From NCBI GenBank assembly GCA_024704765.1, contig JAKMXF010000089.1, forward strand, positions 1 through 28,536: a stretch of 28,536 nucleotides of DNA, in the 5' to 3' direction. The DNA comes from Oopsacas minuta. Its lineage: Eukaryota > Animalia > Porifera. Of the stretch, positions 2,991 to 26,165 are shown in pieces. Every line of letters starts with the position of its first letter. The first letter of the stretch is position 1. Position numbers and translations under genes: made by a program. Under the pieces are notes generated by a model that saw only the letters and a list, made by a program, of their open reading frames with translations, made no database searches and was not told the DNA's origin.

Positions 2991-4220
2991 CTAAAATATT
3001 AGGAGACGATTATCACGATGATTAACAACTACAATACTTCCATCTGAGTCCAGATAAACTCCAATAGGTCCTGATAATGAATCAGTGAGTTTATGAAGTA
3101 ATTGTCCTGTATTATCAAATATAATAACAATATTACTGCTGTAATTCGAAATAATGAAATTATCAGCTCCAGCTATCTTGAATGAATACGGATGATTCAA
3201 ATGTTTGCTAATAGAATTACATACAGTGTTCTGTACTTGATTAAGATTATAGTTGAAAGAGTAGAGAAATGGATTTTGATGAGACAATACAAATATAGTA
3301 TCTTTAGTCAGTTGTATGTCTACTGGAGATTTGACTATACCAATTCCAAACTGATATTTGTAAGAATAATCTTGTGAGAATATTTGTATTCTGTTGTTAG
3401 AGCAATCACATACATAAATATCTCCATTATCTACATTGATAACAATACCACGAGGAGTGTTGAATTGTCCTTCTCCACTACCTCGAGTACCTATTTGTTT
3501 GATAAAATTTCCTTTCAAATCAAATAGCAACAAACAATCTGCTCCATCCTGGCTAACAAATACTCTCTCTTTATCAATAGTAATACAGGCAGGAGACTTC
3601 ATCTTATCAGCACCAAATAGAAACAAGAATTTACCATCTTTACTGAATACCTGTACTCTCTTGTTTCTTGTATCTGCTACATAGATGTTATCTGTTCTGT
3701 AATCAATTGCAACTCCCCATGGAGTACTGAATTGTCCTTCTTCACTACCTCCAGTACCTACACTCACTACTGGCTTCACTTTACCTTTATAATCTACAAC
3801 TGGTAGACATGAGTAACTTGAATTAACAACACTAATCTTACCAAATCCATTAATCATATCTAATAGTGTATTATCAAATTCAAATGAAATATGTTTGGGT
3901 TTCCATTCAGATTCTATTTCTTTCTGTTTCTGTTCTAGGATTTTGATCATTTCAGTTTGAGTTTCTGTAAAGATTTGTGATTGAAGATTTTCTCGAATTG
4001 ATTTTGATGATTTTTCTATTTCTAGTATATACTCTTTATGTTTATCATTTTCCAGTTTGTATTTGTTGTGTATTTCTTCTAATTCTATCAAAAGTTCTGT
4101 TTTCCGATTACTCAAATAACTTATCAATTCATTGAAATGAGTTTCAATCTCAGTTCTGATTTGAGTTACTTGAAACTCAAAACTAACTTCTTCCACTGAT
4201 GACGTAGATGTAGTAGCCAT
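2991..4220 (-). CDS. Coiled-coil + NHL-repeat (six-bladed beta-propeller) protein, TRIM-NHL-like but lacking RING and B-box
   Basis: 409-aa uninterrupted ORF. The N-terminal ~110 aa are helical/coiled-coil, followed by NHL repeats (GQFSTPWGVAID...IYVADTRNKRVQVFS; GQFNTPRGIVIN...IYVCDCSNNRIQIFS). No Cys/His zinc-finger pattern at the N-terminus. Confidence 0.92.
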   Translation of the reverse strand: MATTSTSSVEEVSFEFQVTQIRTEIETHFNELISYLSNRKTELLIELEEIHNKYKLENDKHKEYILEIEKSSKSIRENLQSQIFTETQTEMIKILEQKQKEIESEWKPKHISFEFDNTLLDMINGFGKISVVNSSYSCLPVVDYKGKVKPVVSVGTGGSEEGQFSTPWGVAIDYRTDNIYVADTRNKRVQVFSKDGKFLFLFGADKMKSPACITIDKERVFVSQDGADCLLLFDLKGNFIKQIGTRGSGEGQFNTPRGIVINVDNGDIYVCDCSNNRIQIFSQDYSYKYQFGIGIVKSPVDIQLTKDTIFVLSHQNPFLYSFNYNLNQVQNTVCNSISKHLNHPYSFKIAGADNFIISNYSSNIVIIFDNTGQLLHKLTDSLSGPIGVYLDSDGSIVVVNHRDNRLLIF

Positions 4221-7679: not shown

Positions 7680-7965
7680 TTAATTTATTCAAAATCAACA
7701 AATAAAATACAAATGATTTCATATGTAAATATAATTGTTGATGAAATAAACACGTTAAATGCACTGTTGTACTAAAGCTGGAATTGCGAAATTTACACAC
7801 ACACTAATAAGGTTGTTCTGAGGACGACTAACCGAGTCCTACAACAGTAATTTCATTTTGGTCACCAATGACCATTCTCTACATGTTTTACTCAAAGCTT
7901 GCACTACAGAAGAACTCGGATAAGACCGTACCTCTTCGGAAAACAAAATTAGTACGTACAGTAGA

Positions 7966-8463
7966 TGCCGGATATAAGAACACCGGATATAAGAACACCG
8001 GATATAAGAACACCGGATATAAGAACACCGGATATAAGAATACCGGATATAAGAACACCGGATATAAGAACACCGGATATAAGAATACCGGATATAAGAA
8101 CACCGGATATAAGAACACCGGATATAAGAACACCGGATATAAGAACACCGGATATAAGAATACCGGATGTAAGAACACCGGATATAAGAACACCGGATAT
8201 AAGAACACCGGATATAAGAACACCGGTTATAAGAACACCGGATATAAGAACACCGGATATAAGAACACCGGATATAAGAACACCGGTTATAAGAACACCG
8301 GATATAAGAACACCGGATATAAGAACACCGGATATAAGAACACCGGATATAAGAACACCGGATATAAGAACACCGGATATAAGAACACCGGATATAAGAA
8401 CACCGGATATAAGAACACCGGATATAAGAACACCGGTTATAAGAACATGCCGGCTATAAGAAC
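7966..8463. repeat. 15-bp minisatellite (CACCGGATATAAGAA) x ~33
   Basis: Direct reading: 32 near-perfect units at 7966-8445 plus one degenerate unit. Variants TACCGG at 8041, 8086 and 8161; CACCGGTTAT at 8221, 8281 and 8431. Confidence 0.98.
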
Positions 8464-8573
8464 CACAACTTGAATTACGGAATCTTTTGTATTCTACTCC
8501 ATGGAATTTTTACCGGTTATAGGAACATTCTATGCAAGTTATAAGATCATAATAGAAAACGGTTACTATATAC

Positions 8574-9376: not shown

Positions 9377-10597
9377 TTATTTGAACCAAGACGTCTTCTT
9401 CATCTCCCCAATACATTCTCTGAGATCAGTCACTAATATGTCTATCAATCCTTCAGTCACATGGGGACATATGATTATGTGACATATCTTCCCAAGATGA
9501 CCATCATCATAACATGCTAAACAGTACTTTTTGATAATGAGTGTAGGTAGAGTTGGAGTGCATATTGTCAATGAAGCTGGATTGACAAATGTTTCTATGT
9601 CTAATGACTGAAATTGTTTGACAGCATATTTCACAATCTTCTGACAATGATTATATTCTTCTTGCCAATCGAATTGCAAAAAACGAATTATCCAGCTGAT
9701 TGCATTCAATCCATTACGAGTACTTGTAATACCAATATCGTTAATACTGAGGTATTCTCTGAATCCTTGCTCACTGTATGTACAGCTAGTCCGTTGGTAG
9801 ATTGCGAATAGTCCACAAATATCAGCACCATACCATTTCCAACCACTGATAGCAATTGAGTTGAATTCTATGCCAATTTGATATTGTGGATTATGGTTAT
9901 CCAGATGCCAAAATCCTCCATGAAATGCAGCATCTAGATGCACGAATATTTTATCTCGTGTTACTCCCATGCTATAAAGTGAAATTAATATGGAACATAC
10001 GTCATCACAGGCTCCTTTCATTGTTGTGCCCAGGGTAGCTACCACAAGAATAGAAGGGATATCTCCAGCAGCAGAGTCCTGCTGATCTATCACATTACGA
10101 ACATTTGGTTCTATTTGCTTACAGTTTATTTCTCCGTTGCGCAGAGTTGGTATTTGTAGTATCGCAGAGAATTGACCTTTAGTGAGTTCGATTGCTTTTG
10201 AAATAGAAAAGTGTGACTCGTTAGAATAAATTAGAATTGGTTTGTATGGATACAATTCCTTTAGACCGAAATGGACCCCTGCAATGTTACCTTCTGTTCC
10301 ACCTGTTGTAATGTATGCCCATGTGTTCTCTTCCTTACCTCCCCATGGGGCTATCAACCTGAGAATTATGTCACTCTCCACTTCTACACTAGATATCCAT
10401 GGAACTTCTTTGATGTTCAAACTACTTCCTGAATTTGTAATAAATGGTTGAATTTTTGAGATTTCTAGTTTTGCTTCAATGTTGAGTTGTTGATCTTTGA
10501 AGTTGCCTGGATATCCCAATTGATATATTACCGGTGGTAAAGTTTGATACTTTTTCTTTAATTCCGCTACATAATTTTGTGCACGCAATGAATCCAT
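9377..10597 (-). CDS. Group II PLP-dependent amino-acid decarboxylase, bacterial histidine / plant serine decarboxylase type
   Basis: 406-aa uninterrupted ORF. Motifs LGYPGN, WAYITTGGTEGN, SHFSISKA, TLGTTMKGACDD, HLDAA, SIAISGWK (PLP lysine), EYL...TSTRNG, LAC and CHIIICPHVT are colinear with the HdcA/SDC family. Confidence 0.9.
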   Translation of the reverse strand: MDSLRAQNYVAELKKKYQTLPPVIYQLGYPGNFKDQQLNIEAKLEISKIQPFITNSGSSLNIKEVPWISSVEVESDIILRLIAPWGGKEENTWAYITTGGTEGNIAGVHFGLKELYPYKPILIYSNESHFSISKAIELTKGQFSAILQIPTLRNGEINCKQIEPNVRNVIDQQDSAAGDIPSILVVATLGTTMKGACDDVCSILISLYSMGVTRDKIFVHLDAAFHGGFWHLDNHNPQYQIGIEFNSIAISGWKWYGADICGLFAIYQRTSCTYSEQGFREYLSINDIGITSTRNGLNAISWIIRFLQFDWQEEYNHCQKIVKYAVKQFQSLDIETFVNPASLTICTPTLPTLIIKKYCLACYDDGHLGKICHIIICPHVTEGLIDILVTDLRECIGEMKKTSWFK

Positions 10598-13643: not shown

Positions 13644-14241
13644 CAGGCCTACGAGAGGGTGGGGCAGGCGGGCACTGCACCGGGCCATAACCCGAAGGTA
13701 CCTTAAATTAGAGGCTAAAATTTGTCATACAAGTCATTGAATCTAATTGCAAATTTAACTCAAATTGATAGTATCAATACTTTCTTACCACAATATGATA
13801 GAACTATTAGTGTTGAATGTAATTGTAAAGGCCAGAAAGTAAATCCATTATTACTGAAATTGTGTCTCAGAATTTTTCGCTATTCCAACAAGTGTGGCAT
13901 CTGCTGAAAGATCTTTCAGCAAACTCAAGTTAATCAAGAATTACCTGAGGAGTACGATGTCACTAGATCGATTGATTAGTTTGGCTAGAGTGAGTATTGA
14001 TTCTGAACTAGCTAGAGAGATCGATTTTAGTGATGTAATAAAGCCTTTGCTCGTAAGAAAGCAAGAATGGCATTATTATATTAAACGTCTAGTTGGTATT
14101 TGTTATATACTTAATTCAACTCTAATAACCATCACTTTCAATCGTTCCCTTCTATTATTTACCAAAATTTTTATAATTTGTATAGAGGGGGCTCATCGAT
14201 ACGAACTGCCCTCGAAGATTTGGATTCTATCGGCGGGCCTG
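13644..14241 (+). mobile_element. Internally deleted hAT element (ZMYM1-like transposase group)
   Basis: Ends are CAGGCC and GGCCTG. Flanks ACTGTTCA (13636-13643) and ACTGTTTA (14242-14249) form a 7/8 TSD. Contains a transposase remnant. Confidence 0.8.
13850..14070 (+). pseudogene. hAT (ZMYM1-like) transposase C-terminal remnant
   Basis: LLKLCLRIF, then a frameshift into AIPTSVASAERSFSKLKLIKNYLRSTMSLDRLISLARVSIDSELAREIDFSDVI. This is the characteristic C-terminus of this hAT group. Confidence 0.85.
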
Positions 14242-14259
14242 ACTGTTTATATATCAATC

Positions 14260-15026
14260 CAGTATATTGACATGATCTTCCAATTCCACTATGATTCCTT
14301 AACAAATTTGTAATACTTAAGAGTTTTTATGCAATGAAGGGCAACAAGATAATGGAAGATTCCACGATTTTATAGTTGCAATGTCAAATGAATTCAGGAA
14401 AAGGTTCGGGCAGTTTTCTTCTATTGATAAAATACTTGATTTGTTATCAAATCCATTAACTACCGATTTGCAAAGAGAGTGGAGAGACCAATTTTTCTTT
14501 CCAACAGTATATGTTTGTACTATTCAGTTAGAGATGTGTGATCTACAAGCTGAACGACTTGATATTAACGATGTTTTAACGTTCTGGCCAAGATCATGTA
14601 CTTATCAGAAATACCCTGCACTATTCGATTAAGGTATAAGGTTGTTGATAATGTTTGGATCCGCATACATATGTGAATCACTATTTTCAAATCTCAATTA
14701 TATTAAAAATAAGCACTGAAACAGACTCAATCAAGAACATATGGAAACCTTTTGAGGGTGGCTACTACATCAATTCAAGTTGACTTTGATGATATTCTGA
14801 AAGATAAAAAATCTTTCAAACATCACACTGATATATTACATTAGTTATTATTCTAAGTAAGTAGTTATTGACTTTATGTACTTTTTAGCATTGGATTCAT
14901 AGTAGGAAATTGAGTATATTGCAGTTTCATAGAAGTGATTAATTCAGGGAAATTAATATGTTGTGGACCGCTGATCCTTTTAAAACAAATATATGGACCT
15001 TGACTGAAATCCTTTGGGCATCTATG
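14260..15026 (+). mobile_element. 3' part of a Buster/GTF2IRD2-like hAT element with a decayed transposase
   Basis: Translation gives MSNEFRKRFGQF...IQLEMCDLQ...FW...KYPALFD*GIRLLIMFGSAYICESLFSNLNYIKNKH*NRLN... ending QTSH* at 14831. The right end TTTGGGCATCTATG (to 15026) is followed by CCCTAAAT. Left end not found. Confidence 0.8.
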
Positions 15027-15142
15027 CCCTAAATCGTGGGGGATAGTGAAAATGTCGGTAGCACAATGTAAATATCCGCTTGTTTCGCCTGATCATTCAA
15101 TTAAATTGACCGTTTTAATTTCCCCATGCTAATATATATATA

Positions 15143-16056
15143 CAGTCAGGGGACAAAAGTATTCGACCACACAAATATATTGTCATAAATTGTATACTCT
15201 TTCTCGCTCCTATATATTGTGTAGTCTATATTCGTAGCTGCTATCTAGTAATTTCCATAGAATAACGTATGTTTTCCAAGAATTTCAAAAAAATATTTTC
15301 GATTTACACTTTTTGAAGGTGTTAATTATTCATAATTATTAGATAATTATTGATAATCAAAATATGTGGGAAATCAAAGCCTATTAAGAATCTATAATTT
15401 CTGACTTGATATTTGAATTCTACGTAGGCGAGTTACCCCAGATTGAAATTTCCAATCGATTGAACAATTTTTACCAGAGCTATAGATGAATTTCAATTTA
15501 TGTCATTTTTGCCATCTTTTGCCCAAGGTGGCACAAGTGGCCGCTACCAAGAGGTTATTTTGGAATTCAAGGGTTAGCATAGTCATGTCATTCGAAAATA
15601 TTACTATGACTTATTCCTCCTAACCCTAGTTGATTTCCTTGTAGTGGCGCTTTTCCTGCCACCTGTGCTACTTTGTTGAAAAAGTGGCACAGGTGGGACA
15701 AATTGAACGTCTTCTAGAACTTTGGTAAAATTGTTCATTCCGATTGGAAATTTCAATCTGGGGTAACTCGCCTATGTAGAATTCAAATATCAAGTCAGAA
15801 ATTATAGATTCTTAATAGGCTTTGATTTCCCACATATTTTGATTATCAATAATTATCTAATAATTATGAATAATTAACACCTTCAAAAAGTGTAAATCGA
15901 AAATATCTTCTTGAAATTCTTGAAAAACATGTCTTATTCTCTACAAATTACTAGATAGCAGCTACGAATATAGACTACACAATATATTGGAGCGGGAAAG
16001 AGTATACAATATATGACAATATATTTGTGTGGTCGAATACTTTTGTCCCCTGCCTG
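15143..16056. mobile_element. Foldback-type Tc1/mariner non-autonomous element with very long inverted repeats
   Basis: Termini CAGTCAGGGGACAAAAGTATTCGACCACAC / GTGTGGTCGAATACTTTTGTCCCCTGCCTG, with TA on both sides. About 15143-15500 is the reverse complement of about 15700-16056, with long perfect tracts. Confidence 0.92.
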
Positions 16057-16171
16057 TATGATATATATGATATATATGATATATATATATGATATATATG
16101 ATATATATATATATGATATATATGATATATATATATATGATATATATGATATATATATATGATATATATGA
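16057..16171. repeat. Compound (AT)nG microsatellite
   Basis: Units (AT)n-G of lengths 9,9,13,9,15,9,15,9,13,9 lie directly after the foldback element's TA. Confidence 0.95.
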
Positions 16172-18422
16172 TACATATTATTTCTAGTTTGACAAAAACA
16201 AGCTAAATTGTGTTAATATCTCTGGTAACCACCATAATCGTTATAATCCAAACTAATTAATAGAAGGCGAATCGTATCAAACTTTATATATTAATTTAGT
16301 CTAAAATTTGATGACCTCCTCTTTTGATGCATAAAAAAATTGATGAACTACTTGGAGGGAATTACAGCATCTATGGTGTCTACTGCACTTTGATTACTAT
16401 TATCTAAAGTCCGAACTGCCCTCAATTACAATAATGGAATAATTACTGGTTGGGACAGATTAATAATAACAAGCGGGCGCGGGCTACACTTGCTAGGTCG
16501 CTTAACAATGCGAATTCATTACTTAAGTGTATAAACCACTACCTTGGACAATATCAAGTTATATCAAGACTAGAATTAATATCTACGCCAGTGTTTCCCT
16601 GGGGGCGGTCATGCAGCAAGTGGGCGCTGGGGATGGTAGGTTTTAGAAAGCTAAACAAAGATCTAACCTCACGTCATAACAGCAATACCTATTCCTAAAT
16701 AAGAATTAACAGTAGGTAACCATACTTCAAGGATCAAAGCCAATAAATGTGATAACTATACTATTGAATTGGTGATTATTTAGAACAACCTATTCATCGA
16801 GTCGTTCTTCGAGAATATTTGGCCGCAAAACTTCTTAGTCGCCGGCCAGGCAATAACAATGTAATTCAACACTCTTCAATTACAAATACTTTTCAATTAT
16901 TAATTGTAAACAGCTGCGCAATAAAATAATTATACAGACCGATATTCTCGGTAACTTGTGTTTCTATGCATCACTATAAAGCGAAATAGGAGTTACTGTA
17001 CTATGAAAGCATAAATACATTATAGCAACATTACAAGGGGCAATTACAATTCATTTTGAGGTGAACATTGTCGAAATAAGTTGCAATAAAAACAGTTAAA
17101 ATTTCACAATGCATTTTTATCCCTACTTTGCTCTGTGCCAAGTAGAAATTATATTCCAACTCTTTTAACAGAATCTGATCGAAGTAGGAATATTCCCTTT
17201 GTTGCGGAACATAATCAGAATGTTTAAATCCGTAAATATGTTGATGAAAATATATTTTGTTAGGATATTACAAAAATAGGATTCAAATGTTGGAATGTGT
17301 CATACTCCTATTTCTGAAATTACCCTACAATTATCGTCGCTCCAATGTCTTTTAACCAAGGCTGCTAATCCAATCCATCGAGACAATCATTGATTGTCGA
17401 TAGCTACGTTTAGTATCGATTCGATTGTCGCCCAAATTTATCGATACTTTTCATCAATAAATAAGGCCGATTTTCCCTATAAACGGGTCAAGTGCGACTT
17501 TTATTGCTGAATTTAACTGGGCTCATTGCTAAAATGAATTTTCAAAAACTAGGATCCTATCTGGATTTAATTTGAATTTAATTCATCAAATTATGGTACC
17601 ACCCCCATTATTATTCTAACGCCAAAAGTCAAAAATTGCTATGACTTGTAGTTTCAAATTTGTTAATTAGGTAGTGTTTCCACAAAAAGCGAGTCATTAA
17701 ACGCGTTAGAATATCTAGCTGCGATAAAATGAAGGATATATGAAAAGAGTAATACATGCATCTGCGACAGAGTCCCCACTCCATCCCTAAAATGAGCACT
17801 TTAACTCCTACTTATTGCTAATCTATTCGAAAATTCCTGGTTGAATAAAAAATAAAAAACCGTCCATTCAAATTCACCCATTAACAGTGTTTCCATAGGA
17901 TTTTTGTACTACTTGGTTAAATTAGGGAAGTCATTTTCCACAAGAAGTGAGAGCCAAGCTCTCTCACTCTTTGAAAAGAGGCCTGACATGGCCTGAGCCT
18001 ATCTTTCTACTATGGCAACGCAGCAGAATGCGGCCTAAAAAGGCCCAAAATGACTGATTCATGACACGTCAATATTCAAAATTATTCTACTATAACTCCT
18101 AACGAAAAGGAACATGAAAAATTTACCACTTCGTTTTAACCAATTCCTGGAACCAAATCGAGATTTTAGCACCTATTTGACACATTTTCCGGGCAGTATT
18201 CGGTTAATGCTCTACACTGTGAAACAATTAACTTTATCAATTGCAGAGATTGCTCAAATGAGATTGTATAACCAGATTATGTAAAACAACCAGTAATACA
18301 TACATACAATAAGTAATACTAATATCATAATAATAATAATAATAACAATAACAATAGCTATAATGTACAAACTAGAAGGAAATAATCATGTTTAGGAGAG
18401 TAAAATAATTCTCAAGTTATGT

Positions 18423-19502
18423 TTACACAGTTGTATCTTCTGGCACCTTAACCTGACCTCTCAGCTGTGCCTGCAGGAGTTCCATCTGACGCTTCATCTC
18501 TACCAATTCCTGGTCCTTCTGGAGCAACAGCTGATCCTTCGCCTTCTGCACGAGATGAGTGGTGGTAGCTAACTCAGCGAACCCGAAAGAATTTCCAGTA
18601 GATACTTCTGAGCTGGGTCCTGATACTACAGTCTCCTGCAATTTCCGCTTCCGATAATTCTCATAGTGTATCTCCTGTGTCGCATCCTTGAGATCTTGCA
18701 TGTGAGTTCGTATCAGCATATTTCGCAATAACGGAAAGTCTGAGTGGTCTCCATTCTCAACTTCTACAATCCCCCAGGGGTACAGCCTGCCGCGAACCTT
18801 CTTCCCATTTACATCGAAAATAGTCCGCGAGCCAATTATTCCAAGTGGTATTGCAGCACGAACTTTCTGTACTTCATCATTGTCCTCCTCATCTTCTATG
18901 TCTCCGGTGTAGATCTTGATTCCATTCTCTCGAATTTCTCGAAGTACACGAATCTTCTTGGCTCGTAGCTCAGATTCAGTCAAGGTGTCAGCTTTAGCGA
19001 TAACTGGGATAATATTTACAGATTCGTGCAGCTCTCGCATGAATTCAATATCCAGAGGTTTCAGTCCGTGAGCACTGGGGTTCAGGAAATAAAGACACGC
19101 GTGTACACGGTTATCAACAATATTCTTCCTATTCAAGCCAGATTCATCCTCCAGATATTTAGAGTACTTCTCATTGATATATTGAATAATCTGCTCCCAA
19201 CAGTTTCTATTGTCAACAGCATCTCCAAACCCAGGCGTGTCAACGATAGTGAGTCTTAGTTTCACTCCTTTCTCTTCAAACTCAAAAGTGACTTTATTGA
19301 TCTCTACTGTCTGTTTGATGGATTCGAAAGCTGGCTTTGCCCGATCAGGGCGTATTTCATTTAGGAAGAGAGTATGGATTAAAGTGGACTTACCCAGCCC
19401 AGATTCCCCAACCACCATAATAGTAAAATCGAAACCTCGACGAAATTGTTTTTTATGGACAATCAATGGCAGTCCACCGAATCCTATGCCACCTTCAGAC
19501 AT
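18423..19502 (-). CDS. Septin, SEPT2 group (SEPT1/2/4/5-like)
   Basis: Polybasic HKKQFRRGFDF, G1 GESGLGKST, G3 DTPG, G4 AKAD, septin unique element GRLYPWGIVEVEN..H.DF..LR.ML and a C-terminal coiled coil. The start is moved to ATG 19502 (MSEGG) because the listed start at 19532 is a TTG. Confidence 0.95.
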   Translation of the reverse strand: MSEGGIGFGGLPLIVHKKQFRRGFDFTIMVVGESGLGKSTLIHTLFLNEIRPDRAKPAFESIKQTVEINKVTFEFEEKGVKLRLTIVDTPGFGDAVDNRNCWEQIIQYINEKYSKYLEDESGLNRKNIVDNRVHACLYFLNPSAHGLKPLDIEFMRELHESVNIIPVIAKADTLTESELRAKKIRVLREIRENGIKIYTGDIEDEEDNDEVQKVRAAIPLGIIGSRTIFDVNGKKVRGRLYPWGIVEVENGDHSDFPLLRNMLIRTHMQDLKDATQEIHYENYRKRKLQETVVSGPSSEVSTGNSFGFAELATTTHLVQKAKDQLLLQKDQELVEMKRQMELLQAQLRGQVKVPEDTTV

Positions 19503-19760
19503 TGTTAGTACAAGAAAATTAAAAGAGAACAATTAGAAGCTAGAGTTTAGAAAAGAACAGTAGGTATTCATTAACAAGGTTAATATAACATATATAACTG
19601 CATACTCCACAGAACAGTGAATGCAATTGATACCACGCATGGAGAGATTCATTTATTGTAACCATGTGGTATTGCTTGCAATATCAAAAAATATAATCCA
19701 TGAATTATGATACAAACTGTAGTATGTAGCAGAGAGGGTTAGGGGTATTCGTAGACCAGT

Positions 19761-22772: not shown

Positions 22773-25700
22773 TTACCAGTTAGAAGTATTAGAATTATCC
22801 ATAGCTTCGTTACTATGTAAACCTCTCAATTCTAGTGCAAGTTGCTTCTCTAGTTCAATTAATGGTTTTTGAGTTGAAATTATTTCTTTCTCTTTCTTAA
22901 AATGTTCGAGTAAATGCGGGTGAATCAGAACGGTTTCTTCCCAGAGAGTCTGTAGTTCCTTCAAAGATTCTTCTCTCTGTTCTATTAACTTAAGTGCTCT
23001 AGATTTAATTGATTCTAAACTATCCTCTACATTAACCAAACTCTCAGAATCTAGCAAAACAGGAGTTGTATGAATATCAGCTGACACAGGGAATTGGAAT
23101 GTCTGCTTGTCTCCTAAATAGAAACTCCCAAAATTTATGCATTCAGATACGTAGTATTTCCATGCTGCTTTATTGTTGCCAATCTGACAGAGAGTATAGG
23201 GATTGCCTACCACAATAATATGGTCTTTAGCACGTCCTAAAATAGTGTTAAGCAGCTTGGGGTCTTCTAACAACGCAACTGCGTGAGGATCTGCAGCCTT
23301 ATACTCACTCTCAGACAACGTACGGACAGTATTTATTATCAACACACGGTACTCTTTGCCCTGAATTGCTTCAAAAGTTAATACTTCAACTCCATACACT
23401 TTCTCTCTCCTCAGGTAGTCACGGATTAGCCATACCTGTCCGAGATAAAGGGAGAGAACTCCTATTTCTTTACTCTCAAAGCTCTTACTCAGCTCTTTCA
23501 CGATGTGAACAATCTCCTCAGCCTCGGAGGTATTCATGTAGGATGGAAAATTTGCGATTTTACTCTCATTGCCTATAACACCGTGGAATGCCAATGGCTT
23601 CAACTCGTTGTGAGGGATCGACTGCTTTGCACGCATAGGAATTAGAGATTGGTCGTAATAGAGTTTTGACAATAAATTCACAATAGCTGGGGCAGAACGG
23701 TAGTTCTCTTTAAGCAGTATCATGGAGTTGTTCTGGTATACAGGGAGATTGGAGAGTCGCCCCAATAAGGACAGCTCTAGACCGAATCTCTGAGCTATAG
23801 GCGAGCTGAGTTTTGGCGTCACTTGGTATTCATCTCCAGCTATAATTATCTTAGTGAAATGCCCAGCGAGGGAAACAGGGATATTCAGCTCAGGCTCTGA
23901 AATGAGTGCTGCTTCATCTACGATAATGTGAGTGAAGAATTCTTTTGGTAAATTCATTCTCATGAGAAAAGGACATGTGAATACAGTTGTGACTATGATA
24001 CGACAGAATGAAAGGTCTTTCTCGTCAGGAACACTTCCATGATCATCTTTAATAATAGCGTACTGTCTAGCAATGTCATTAAAATGGCTAGTGACACGTC
24101 TTATAGGTGTGAAGAATCGAAATAATTGTTTCAGTCCGGAAGGATGAGCTGTATCTAACCTATTGTTATGTAAAAGAGATAGAGCATGTATGTCTTCTAT
24201 GTATTTGTTAGCAGGAAAGTTGTTTTTGCAGCAAATAAGAATGCGCATTGATCTCTGCTGGCTTCCTAGGATATAGGCTAAATTAGCTAATGTCCAGCTT
24301 TTGCCACATCCAAACGGACCAGAAATAACCGTAGGAATATTCTGGAAAGAGCTGTCTAACGCAGAGGTAATAGCATGTCGTTGTGTAGCAGAAAGATCAG
24401 ATTTTCTCCAGTAGCTTGAGTAATCAGGGTGTAGCTGTGAAGGTGCAGTTTTGTTCCTGACACTAGGAAACACAGTACGAGGGTCAATGAGCTGTAATGC
24501 TTGGTGCATCGTTGAAAAATGAAAATCAATAGAACTCTCCTTGAAGCGTACATCTGCTACTCCACCATACTGCTCACACACAGCTACCATCTCATCTGAC
24601 ACTACAATCCAAATGTAGTCATGTCCTAACTCTACACTGGGACAGTAGTATACAAAATTATGAAGCGCTTTAGGTTTAATAAGAGCGATGTTAGGTGGTC
24701 TTAAGAAATGGAAACCTTCGAACAAAGAACCACACATTTCTAGTTTCAGAAAACTATATCCTTTTCCAGCAAATTCAGTCCCTCCTCTCCCTTTGTCGTA
24801 TTTATCAAATTGATTACAAACTATTTTCCTATTAATTGGTTGGTCTTTGAGATCATAATCAAGGAATATTCTTCTGCATTCATATTCTTCCAAATAGAGC
24901 AACATCTCGAATATACGTTTATAGTTCTTATAGGTTAATTCCTCTTTAAGAACATTCAGGTGTTTCTCATTCTTTATCATCTCGTCGAGATTAACAGGTA
25001 TTTTAGACGTGAATACTTCATTATTAAAATCTCTGTCTAGATATGGAGAATCTATATATTTTACTTGATAGTCTTTATCCCATAACAGAGATTCTCTTTG
25101 CTTCGAAGGAATAAAACTTTTGAATTTAGCTTGCACGTCTTGGGGAGCTTGTATATCATGACATTCTCTGTGAACTAGTACAGCCAATCTTTTCACGATT
25201 TGTAACCGTGAAAAATCGAATATTATCCTAGCATTATACTCACCTAACTCTACTTTAAACTGGACTGGAATTCTCACAGAGCAGTGCTTGTTGATAGCTT
25301 TTTTAAGTTTCAATACAGTACCTCTCCGTTCTGGTGGTGTGTCCACAAGCTCGAACCCACCAGTTTGTCTATCTTGGTATTTGGCTTGGTAAAGACGGAA
25401 TTTTCTATCAAAATCTGTAGTGAGAATCACACCCAATAGCATTTCAACATCTTCTGACAAAGTTGTAACAAGAAAAGTCCACTCGAATATTTTTGGGCTT
25501 TTGTCCAGTTCAATTTGTATTTGAAGCGGTTGATTAATTGGATTAATAATGATACTATTAGGCGAAGATTCGTTGGAATTAGAAAATTTTAAAACATTTT
25601 CAAAATAGAGATCAATATCATTCTCTCCTGGCACACTAGCATTCGGATTGTACAAACTAACACCACGTCCCCTACTAGGCATGTTTTGCATATTATATGG

Positions 25701-26165
25701 CATTCTTGTGTTGCTTTGTAGTTGTTGAGGAGGTCTGTGTATAGGATATTTATAGTATCCAGGGGCAATATGTATATTCTGCTGTATTGTACTGTTTAGA
25801 TCAGTAGTGACAGGAATTTGGGAGAGGTAATGTGTATCTGGATTATGGCTCTGTAACATTGAGTTTTCATGAGTTGCAATTCCTTCCCATATTTCTAATT
25901 CTAGTCTATTATGTGCATATGGACAAGAGCTAAGTTTACACGATTTGTAGTTACCGCAAGCCTTAAGGATGGAGTGCTGAGTCTTCATACGAATACGAAC
26001 ATAATCGTGACTATCTGGGTCTAAAGCTACTGTAGCAGGTTTCCAAGGTCTTCTACACTTACTGCAGTATTCTATCCTATCTCTTTCAATTGTTGTATCA
26101 CTTTTAGATATTGCCTTCATATCTGTAAAACAATTCTCACAAACTATCAATGGGATAACTTCCAT
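22773..26165 (-). CDS. HELZ/HELZ2-like C3H zinc finger, UPF1-like superfamily 1 RNA helicase
   Basis: 1130-aa uninterrupted ORF. N-terminal CxxC..CxxC and C-x5-C-x4-C-x3-H finger (CGNYKSCKLSSCPYAH..ELEIW). Helicase motifs: I GPFGCGKS, II DEAA, III GDEYQVTP, NYRS, V IQGKE, VI LNTILGRAK. Confidence 0.88.
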   Translation of the reverse strand: MEVIPLIVCENCFTDMKAISKSDTTIERDRIEYCSKCRRPWKPATVALDPDSHDYVRIRMKTQHSILKACGNYKSCKLSSCPYAHNRLELEIWEGIATHENSMLQSHNPDTHYLSQIPVTTDLNSTIQQNIHIAPGYYKYPIHRPPQQLQSNTRMPYNMQNMPSRGRGVSLYNPNASVPGENDIDLYFENVLKFSNSNESSPNSIIINPINQPLQIQIELDKSPKIFEWTFLVTTLSEDVEMLLGVILTTDFDRKFRLYQAKYQDRQTGGFELVDTPPERRGTVLKLKKAINKHCSVRIPVQFKVELGEYNARIIFDFSRLQIVKRLAVLVHRECHDIQAPQDVQAKFKSFIPSKQRESLLWDKDYQVKYIDSPYLDRDFNNEVFTSKIPVNLDEMIKNEKHLNVLKEELTYKNYKRIFEMLLYLEEYECRRIFLDYDLKDQPINRKIVCNQFDKYDKGRGGTEFAGKGYSFLKLEMCGSLFEGFHFLRPPNIALIKPKALHNFVYYCPSVELGHDYIWIVVSDEMVAVCEQYGGVADVRFKESSIDFHFSTMHQALQLIDPRTVFPSVRNKTAPSQLHPDYSSYWRKSDLSATQRHAITSALDSSFQNIPTVISGPFGCGKSWTLANLAYILGSQQRSMRILICCKNNFPANKYIEDIHALSLLHNNRLDTAHPSGLKQLFRFFTPIRRVTSHFNDIARQYAIIKDDHGSVPDEKDLSFCRIIVTTVFTCPFLMRMNLPKEFFTHIIVDEAALISEPELNIPVSLAGHFTKIIIAGDEYQVTPKLSSPIAQRFGLELSLLGRLSNLPVYQNNSMILLKENYRSAPAIVNLLSKLYYDQSLIPMRAKQSIPHNELKPLAFHGVIGNESKIANFPSYMNTSEAEEIVHIVKELSKSFESKEIGVLSLYLGQVWLIRDYLRREKVYGVEVLTFEAIQGKEYRVLIINTVRTLSESEYKAADPHAVALLEDPKLLNTILGRAKDHIIVVGNPYTLCQIGNNKAAWKYYVSECINFGSFYLGDKQTFQFPVSADIHTTPVLLDSESLVNVEDSLESIKSRALKLIEQREESLKELQTLWEETVLIHPHLLEHFKKEKEIISTQKPLIELEKQLALELRGLHSNEAMDNSNTSNW

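Follow-up and report, generated by a model that had tools for sequence, protein, structure and literature searches.

An integrated group II amino-acid decarboxylase gene of probable microbial origin in the glass sponge Oopsacas minuta

INTRODUCTION

The described enzymes closest to the decarboxylase reported here are HdcA, the histidine decarboxylase (HDC) of Gram-negative bacteria, and the plant serine and alanine decarboxylases (SDC and AlaDC). HdcA is represented by the family model NF002748, the structures 7eru and 7erv and the Vibrio anguillarum pJM1 HDC; the plant enzymes are represented by AtSerDC (8jg7) and CsAlaDC (8jij and 8jik). In the plant enzymes the residue that follows a GYP motif, Tyr111 in AtSerDC and Phe106 in AlaDC, sets the specificity for Ser or Ala; replacement of this Tyr (Y111A, Y111L, Y111V or Y111W) abolishes Ser decarboxylation, and His308 of CsAlaDC hydrogen-bonds the PLP phosphate (PMC11407765). 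In plant relatives aldehyde-synthase activity has been linked with a Tyr-to-Phe change at the catalytic-loop position (PMC4177580). Animals have decarboxylases of the AADC family (DDC, HDC and TDC) and GAD, and a study of monoamine evolution covers the AADC-type enzymes.

Genes of bacterial origin have been described in sponges. They follow the pattern of the gene described below, in that bacterial-type metabolic enzymes are encoded by genes that are intronless, ameliorated in composition, common to related sponges and sometimes expanded. The catalogue of horizontally transferred genes in Amphimedon contains no group II amino-acid decarboxylase, only phosphatidylserine decarboxylases (PMC4784904). 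Conventional components of monoamine synthesis are not reported in the Oopsacas genome paper, which mentions neither a decarboxylase nor horizontal transfer. No earlier description of a sponge enzyme of this kind was found in the literature.

RESULTS

An intact decarboxylase gene in the sponge genome

The DNA analysed here, referred to as the window, is a stretch of 28,536 nt that makes up positions 1 to 28,536 of contig JAKMXF010000089.1 in assembly GCA_024704765.1. The contig was identified by an exact sequence match as that of the glass sponge Oopsacas minuta, the species to which the WGS project JAKMXF belongs (PMC10280926). The decarboxylase gene, its neighbours and the repeats in its flanks are as follows.

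9377 to 10597, minus strand: decarboxylase gene, with an ATG start, 406 codons, no internal stop and no introns
18423 to 19532, minus strand: septin gene (PF00735 at 2e-116), the syntenic neighbour of the decarboxylase
2991 to 4220, minus strand: NHL-repeat gene (PF01436), the second neighbour in common with assembly ERZ25072740 (L089)
7863 to 8540: 15-nt minisatellite in the flank of the decarboxylase
13894 to 14313: weak hAT dimerisation remnant (E 3e-4, slightly below the Pfam cutoff)
15140 to 16059: foldback inverted repeat of 402 nt in the flank of the decarboxylase

An earlier note on this DNA had described an intronless 406-aa ORF on the same contig as a septin, and both parts of that description were confirmed. 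The same note had the gene embedded among transposons. The flanks do contain the minisatellite, the foldback repeat, TA microsatellites and the sub-threshold hAT remnant, but no intact transposon was found in them within the 28.5-kb window. An ORF at 7868 to 8473 that resembled a pentapeptide repeat proved to be a mere translation of the 15-nt minisatellite.

The composition of the decarboxylase gene is that of its surroundings. Its GC content is 0.37 (GC3 0.31) compared with 0.35 for the window, and its codon usage correlates with that of the NHL gene (0.75) and of the helicase gene (0.59) in the same window. Animal genes are found on both of its flanks. The gene is physically integrated in the host genome and is neither a contaminant nor a recent arrival. 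Its lack of introns had been read as a sign of transfer, a reading that does not hold: because glass sponge genomes are intron-poor, the intronless state carries no weight as evidence. O. minuta has a mean of 1.59 introns per gene, single-exon genes are numerous in Aphrocallistes, and the septin, NHL and helicase genes of the window are each one uninterrupted ORF.

Related genes in other sponge-like assemblies

Using a word-index search, we found about 15 related proteins with 45–68% identity on contigs of up to 1.1 Mb. They come from at least six assemblies besides that of Oopsacas: ERZ25072730, ERZ25072740, ERZ20067936, ERZ25069837, the ERZ234895xx group and ERZ26869290. The copies in these sponge-like assemblies often stand in tandem arrays, compared with a single copy in Oopsacas. 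Animal genes flank them, among them those for thioredoxin, FAM177, a giant WD40 protein, CCDC148 and a Tudor protein; further flanking genes encode an EGF/7tm_2 adhesion GPCR, SNAPC3, a TPR/MLP1 nucleoporin and an LRR-gelsolin protein.

The most informative comparison is with ERZ25072740, in which four tandem decarboxylases lie about 9 kb from a septin gene, with an NHL-like gene between them. This septin is 89% identical to the septin of the window, and a tblastx comparison matched positions 16087 to 16488 of L089 with positions 3018 to 3419 of the window, which fall in the NHL gene. Conservation of the NHL-decarboxylase-septin neighbourhood indicates that the decarboxylase was already at this locus in the common ancestor. 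Judged by septin identity and synteny, the assemblies that carry the relatives would themselves be from glass sponges. At least two paralog lineages, represented by P0003 and P0015, are present within ERZ25072740. P0005, which is among the four tandem copies, no longer has the region that surrounds the PLP lysine.

Between Oopsacas and its relatives dN/dS was 0.12–0.15 (about 0.14), values that are rough because dS, at about 1.5–1.8, is near saturation. Young tandem copies gave a dN/dS of 0.28–0.58. These ratios point to purifying selection overall, with relaxed or diversifying selection after duplication, and the Oopsacas gene itself is intact and appears to be kept by selection. The decarboxylase is an old, fixed and expanded gene family and was not recently acquired. 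Among animals, the family appears to be restricted to glass-sponge-like assemblies.

We considered whether the gene might be an artefact, a contaminant (bacterial or algal DNA that was mis-assembled) or a decaying pseudogene. Such an origin would be in keeping with a contig of only 28.5 kb, an intronless ORF and the lack of a canonical AATAAA within 277 nt downstream of the ORF. It conflicts with an intact reading frame that retains all core catalytic residues, with the host-like composition and the animal genes on either side, with the recurrence of the same gene neighbourhood in an independent assembly, with the low dN/dS and with the presence of copies on Mb-scale contigs that have animal flanks. 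We regard this explanation as effectively refuted.

Enzyme family and predicted fold

The window protein is a group II PLP decarboxylase of fold type I, as identified by Pfam PF00282 (41.4 bits versus a cutoff of 27, E 1e-10). Its top NCBIfam model is NF002748, histidine decarboxylase, which matches residues 26–401 with an E-value of 1e-59. Since the score of 202 bits is below the curated cutoff of 305, the protein is not a member of this HDC equivalog. In a sequence comparison with the PDB the top matches were Photobacterium HDC 7erv (1e-33) and the plant AlaDC and SDC structures 8jij (5e-33) and 8jg7 (6e-28), while DDC and GAD chains of animal type reached only about 1e-4 over about 140 residues. 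An AlphaFold model was built from the family alignment (pLDDT 78.5, pTM 0.81). When this model was compared by Foldseek with 8jg7, 8jij and 7erv, a TM of 0.72 and an E-value of 1e-24 were obtained, which suggests that the protein adopts the three-domain fold of the HDC/SDC type.

The motifs listed in the earlier note were essentially right. GYPGN, WAYITTGGTEGN and GTTMKGACDD are present as given there. In EYL...D..I..TRNG the usual S of the family is replaced by T, and there is an insertion in the LAC...H...PHVT tail. The assignment of the protein to the HdcA/plant-SDC type, and not to animal HDC, DDC or GAD, is supported by its sequence and by the predicted fold, and this part of the earlier interpretation stands.

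Within this type the protein is distinct from each of the characterised enzymes. HdcA has the same fold, is of the same length class and matches over the full length. It shares with the window protein the stacking His, the Asp, the PLP Lys, the catalytic-loop Tyr, GYPxN and GGTEGN. However, the two are only 24–29% identical and belong to separate subfamilies. At the position equivalent to 253 HDC has His, and the Vibrio HDC has Glu after GYP, compared with W253 and Gly31 in the window protein; W255 and QFDW of the window protein are both missing from HDC. The plant SDC and AlaDC, which are the top structural matches, have the same PLP-binding residues and catalytic Tyr, but they carry Tyr111 or Phe106 in the place of Gly31 and an N-terminal extension that the window protein lacks. 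Animal AADC-family enzymes and GAD have PF00282 and the PLP chemistry in common with it, but they are about 480–650 aa long and belong to a different subfamily. The subfamily of the sponge decarboxylase is one without a characterised member.

Phylogeny and origin of the gene

A profile of the clade was compared with 1.84 billion representative proteins. This yielded 2709 relatives, the best 150 of which were analysed. Among these 150 the sponge representatives are followed by three proteins, P0017, P0028 and P0029, and then by short contigs and microalgae, namely Picocystis, the diatoms Cyclotella and Stephanocyclus, and Prasinoderma. Two of the three proteins are confirmed as bacterial by their genomic context. 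P0028, a hypothetical protein, belongs to a Bdellovibrionales MAG, and its contig, which is 4.6 kb long and dense, also has glyoxalase-like and GNAT genes. In each of three independent samples P0029 immediately follows a prokaryotic COX2-COX1-COX3-COX4_pro-SCO1-SURF1 operon. P0017 is from a 1.3-kb Logan contig of run DRR267105. It is probably bacterial as well, since its top match is P0028 (41% identity, 298 bits, compared with 35% and 207 bits for the sponge proteins) and all of its other matches are bacterial HDC-like proteins. Support for the sponge clade, and for its grouping with these three proteins, was as follows.

FastTree, 150 rows: sponge clade 100; sponge clade with P0017, P0028 and P0029 98
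IQ-TREE with LG+C20, careful, 44 rows: sponge clade 100/100; sponge clade with P0017, P0028 and P0029 98/97
IQ-TREE, quick and resampled, 46 rows: sponge clade 100; sponge clade with P0017, P0028 and P0029 93

The sister of this sponge-plus-bacteria clade is an algal group made up of Cyclotella, Prasinoderma and four short contigs. Sponge proteins, the bacterial trio, the algal group and some long branches together form a subfamily with a support of 98–100, from which canonical HDCs and plant SDCs are excluded. It carries a signature consisting of GG[FY]W, K-W-[YFWH]-G after the PLP lysine, and Q[FL]DW. Annotated HDCs of Methylocystis and Altericista are on the opposite side of the tree from this W255 subfamily, and the grass SDC clade, outside of which the window protein falls, is on the other major branch. 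Nesting within bacterial, algal or viral HDC/SDC clades had been proposed as support for a transfer. The protein does nest with bacterial sequences in all three trees, but it does so outside the canonical HDC and SDC clades.

A narrower signature, GGFW/KWYG/QFDW, had been taken as exclusive to the sponge-plus-bacteria clade and was dropped when GGFW/KWFG/QFDW was found in the diatom protein. Among GTDB species representatives the 23 best hits are 29–31% identical and none of the 23 carries the subfamily signature, so that no donor lineage can be named. An Oligoflexia hit (L058) falls outside the subfamily in the IQ-TREE C20 tree. A plasmid vector was also considered and set aside, the plasmid scan having returned only canonical siderophore-type HDCs with an identity of 29% or less.

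The algal members raise the alternative that the gene is foreign but has a eukaryotic or viral source. It would then have come from a microalga, such as diatom or prasinophyte-like prey, or through a large DNA virus of algae, with the two bacterial proteins as separate offshoots of the subfamily. Sponges filter-feed on microalgal cells, and a donor of this kind would fit both the position of the algae as sister to the sponge-plus-bacteria clade and the signature of the diatom protein. For a virus one could cite P0042, a deep member of the subfamily. Its contig of 89.8 kb is made up of ORFans apart from a C962R-type primase and an SNF2 helicase, which adjoin the decarboxylase, and this context looks virus-like; but P0042 is weakly placed on a very long branch (1.67), and an IMG/VR scan gave no viral relative. 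For an alga, the difficulty is that the bacterial trio adjoins the sponge clade in every tree. When sponges and algae were constrained to group together with the bacteria outside, the tree was 15.4 lnL units worse. The AU test gave p 0.053, by which such a tree is disfavoured but only borderline rejected. The stem of the sponge clade is long (0.74), which makes long-branch effects possible. We consider an algal or viral donor rather unlikely.

Vertical inheritance would require an ancient eukaryotic gene that survived in a few algae and, of all opisthokonts, in glass sponges alone. The subfamily does include eukaryotic members, the algae; the gene is old in sponges, as the paralog lineages of ERZ25072740 attest, and its composition is fully host-like. 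Independent losses would nevertheless be needed in fungi, in choanoflagellates, in the other sponge classes and in all other animals, and neither the exhaustive search (best 150 of 2709) nor the word searches gave any sequence from these lineages. Orthologues widespread in animals would have spoken against a transfer, and none from other animals was present among the named hits, among the 30 labelled representatives of the best 150 or in the Atlas clusters. In addition, the nearest neighbours of the sponge proteins are bacterial, and the mixture of bacteria, distant algae and a virus-like contig in one subfamily is the pattern expected of a mobile gene. Vertical descent is in our judgement very unlikely.

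We conclude that a foreign origin is well supported, with a bacterium as the favoured donor. Of the explanations considered, foreign origin remains the best whichever supported topology is taken, because a grouping of sponges with algae would not amount to vertical descent either. The earlier proposal of an acquired enzyme is supported: a protein of the HdcA-SDC type is encoded within an animal genome, bacteria and, after them, algae provide its closest relatives, and the searches gave it in no further animal lineage, so that horizontal acquisition explains the data best. We infer the direction of transfer and the donor, and believe that this is probably a domesticated foreign gene of microbial origin, for which a bacterium is the most probable donor and a microalga or algal virus a less probable one.

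Active-site residues

Three positions of the active site are referred to below.

10505 to 10507, minus strand: codon of G31, the residue after GYP (Tyr in plant SDC, Phe in AlaDC)
9836 to 9841, minus strand: codons of W253 and K254; K254 is the PLP Schiff-base lysine, and W253 is in the place of the canonical His (S-x-H-K)
9752 to 9754, minus strand: codon of Y282, the catalytic-loop Tyr, which corresponds by alignment to Y336 of CsAlaDC and Y341 of AtSerDC

In the family alignment H129, T192, D222, A224, K254, Y282, D287 and R294 are conserved, and K254, D222, H129 and Y282 align with their counterparts in CsAlaDC, AtSerDC and HDC. The PLP lysine and the catalytic Tyr are 28 residues apart in the window protein versus 27 in 8jij, and the EYL motif is common to both. 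Because all core residues of group II decarboxylases are present, a functional enzyme with a primary amine as its product is to be expected, and we infer from the sequence that the Oopsacas protein would be catalytically active.

The His of the S-x-H-K motif of group II decarboxylases is replaced by W253 in the window protein. While the PLP lysine is invariant, position 253 may be W, Y, N, H or L; this variation is confined to the sponge clade, and nearly all outgroups have H. With Trp in place of the His that hydrogen-bonds the PLP phosphate in CsAlaDC, the activity of the window protein is to be regarded as putative. Plant-type SDC has a C-terminal Cys/His zinc finger. The tail of the window protein is rich in Cys and His (C359, C362, H367, C372, H373, C377 and H379), not all of which are conserved in the clade.

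The residue after GYP is G, S, A, L, E, C, M or I across the sponge paralogs and G in Oopsacas. Elsewhere it is Tyr in the grass SDC P0075 and its relatives and Glu in the annotated Vibrio anguillarum HDC. With Gly31 at the position of the SDC Tyr, and with the protein outside the grass SDC clade, the route from serine to ethanolamine suggested in the earlier note finds no support. The substrate is probably not serine, and histidine is not indicated either. Variation of the residue after GYP among the sponge paralogs suggests that their use of substrates has diversified, and that it would serve amine or specialised metabolism and not the supply of ethanolamine. The catalytic Tyr also varies: it is replaced by V, C or I in the paralogs P0002, P0003, P0012, P0015 and P0027 and is kept in the Oopsacas copy. 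Taken at the level of these residues, the sponge decarboxylases look like a family that is diversifying in specificity.

DISCUSSION

The history that we favour would begin with a foreign decarboxylase gene becoming fixed next to a septin gene in an ancestor of these sponges. The acquired gene would then have taken on the composition of its host and been duplicated, giving rise to the tandem arrays of related species, with one copy kept in Oopsacas. The Oopsacas protein would most likely be a cytosolic homodimeric decarboxylase. In the mechanism that we propose, K254 would carry PLP as an internal aldimine, with D222 anchoring the pyridine ring and H129 stacking on it. The substrate amino acid would form an external aldimine and lose CO2, and Y282, on a mobile loop, would protonate the resulting carbanion so that a primary amine is released.

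Glass sponges conduct electrical signals through their syncytium. It is conceivable, but in our estimate unlikely, that this foreign, expanded decarboxylase family gives them a separate way to make biogenic amines, for example histamine or trace amines. As part of the same reading, aldehydes and specialised metabolites derived from amines may instead be the products of the paralogs without the catalytic Tyr, in one species in a genomic array with FAD oxidases that are likewise of bacterial type.

Sponges are known to have acquired bacterial enzymes by transfer, so the type of event is a familiar one; this enzyme family and the variation of its active site are new. The locus provides a well-documented case of an old transfer into early-branching animals, in which the gene is integrated in a conserved neighbourhood, appears to be under purifying selection and has been expanded. 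Three positions that in group II decarboxylases are as a rule invariant or determine specificity vary naturally among the sponge proteins, namely the His before the PLP Lys, the catalytic-loop Tyr and the residue that follows GYP, and this variation should be useful to enzymologists. The usual animal monoamine enzymes are reportedly absent in glass sponges, and an alternative amine-forming family in these animals therefore merits biochemical interest.

Inverted and tandem decarboxylase copies in sponge-like assemblies

Inverted duplications of the decarboxylase were seen repeatedly, in separate assemblies (ERZ26869290 and ERZ25072740). In each pair the two genes lie in opposite orientation with a few kb between them. 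One tandem array, near a septin gene, contains a damaged copy, P0005.

L094 2189-5759 (ENA ERZ26869290): inverted decarboxylase pair, 405 and 405 aa
L003 10001-18247 (ERZ25072740): inverted decarboxylase pair, 397 and 397 aa
L089 13172-14440 (ENA ERZ25072740): P0005, fourth tandem decarboxylase copy, 422 aa

In P0005 the segment carrying the PLP lysine has been exchanged, exactly there, for low-complexity sequence. Because this replacement covers the PLP-lysine segment, P0005 is probably a dead copy; the array is intact apart from it.

Relatives P0017 and P0042

The bacterial-like near neighbour of the sponge clade, P0017, and the deep subfamily member P0042 were examined in their contigs.

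L004 1-1288 (Logan DRR267105_134711): contig bearing P0017
L096 1-13485 (JGI 3300034168 Ga0335061_0000020, 89.8 kb), also L097: contig carrying P0042

An identical 28 nt is found at both ends of L004, so that the contig's end joins up with its start to give a unit of 1260 nt, which could be circular or tandem. This unit consists of a single 407-aa ORF and only ∼36 nt of spacer. The top protein match of the ORF (P0017) is from a Bdellovibrionales MAG, at 41%. P0042 belongs to the same decarboxylase subfamily on a deep, long branch, and its catalytic Tyr is replaced by Val. It is adjoined by a primase of the AEP_C962R type as well as an SNF2/DEAD helicase, amid ORFans (GC 0.36-0.39), surroundings that look like those of a putative large eukaryotic DNA virus.

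Repeats and a helicase gene in the window

7863-8540: 15-nt minisatellite, ∼45 units
15140-16059: inverted repeat, 402-nt arms, 90% complementary, 116 nt between arms
16039-16200: TA/GATATATAT microsatellite, after the inverted repeat
22773-26165 (-): uninterrupted 1130-aa ORF

The minisatellite accounts for the strong GC skew at 6-8 kb; a 201-aa ‘pentapeptide repeat’ ORF (7868-8473) is its translation and was rejected as spurious. The inverted repeat is a candidate foldback or MITE-like element. The C-terminal half of the 1130-aa ORF contains AAA_11/AAA_12 domains (UPF1-like superfamily 1 helicase), while its N-terminal ∼600 residues had no Pfam match.

An array of decarboxylases and FAD oxidases

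L002 5448-17404 (ENA ERZ20067936 ptg000050l): four decarboxylase paralogs interspersed with two BBE-like FAD oxidases

This array is bordered by CCDC148 and Tudor genes. Among solved structures, the oxidases match N-acetyl-D-hexosamine oxidase best (7zzk, 2e-83). Since the decarboxylases are interleaved with the oxidases, two foreign-type enzyme families share a single tandem array; this may reflect a functional cluster, or it may be due to chance.
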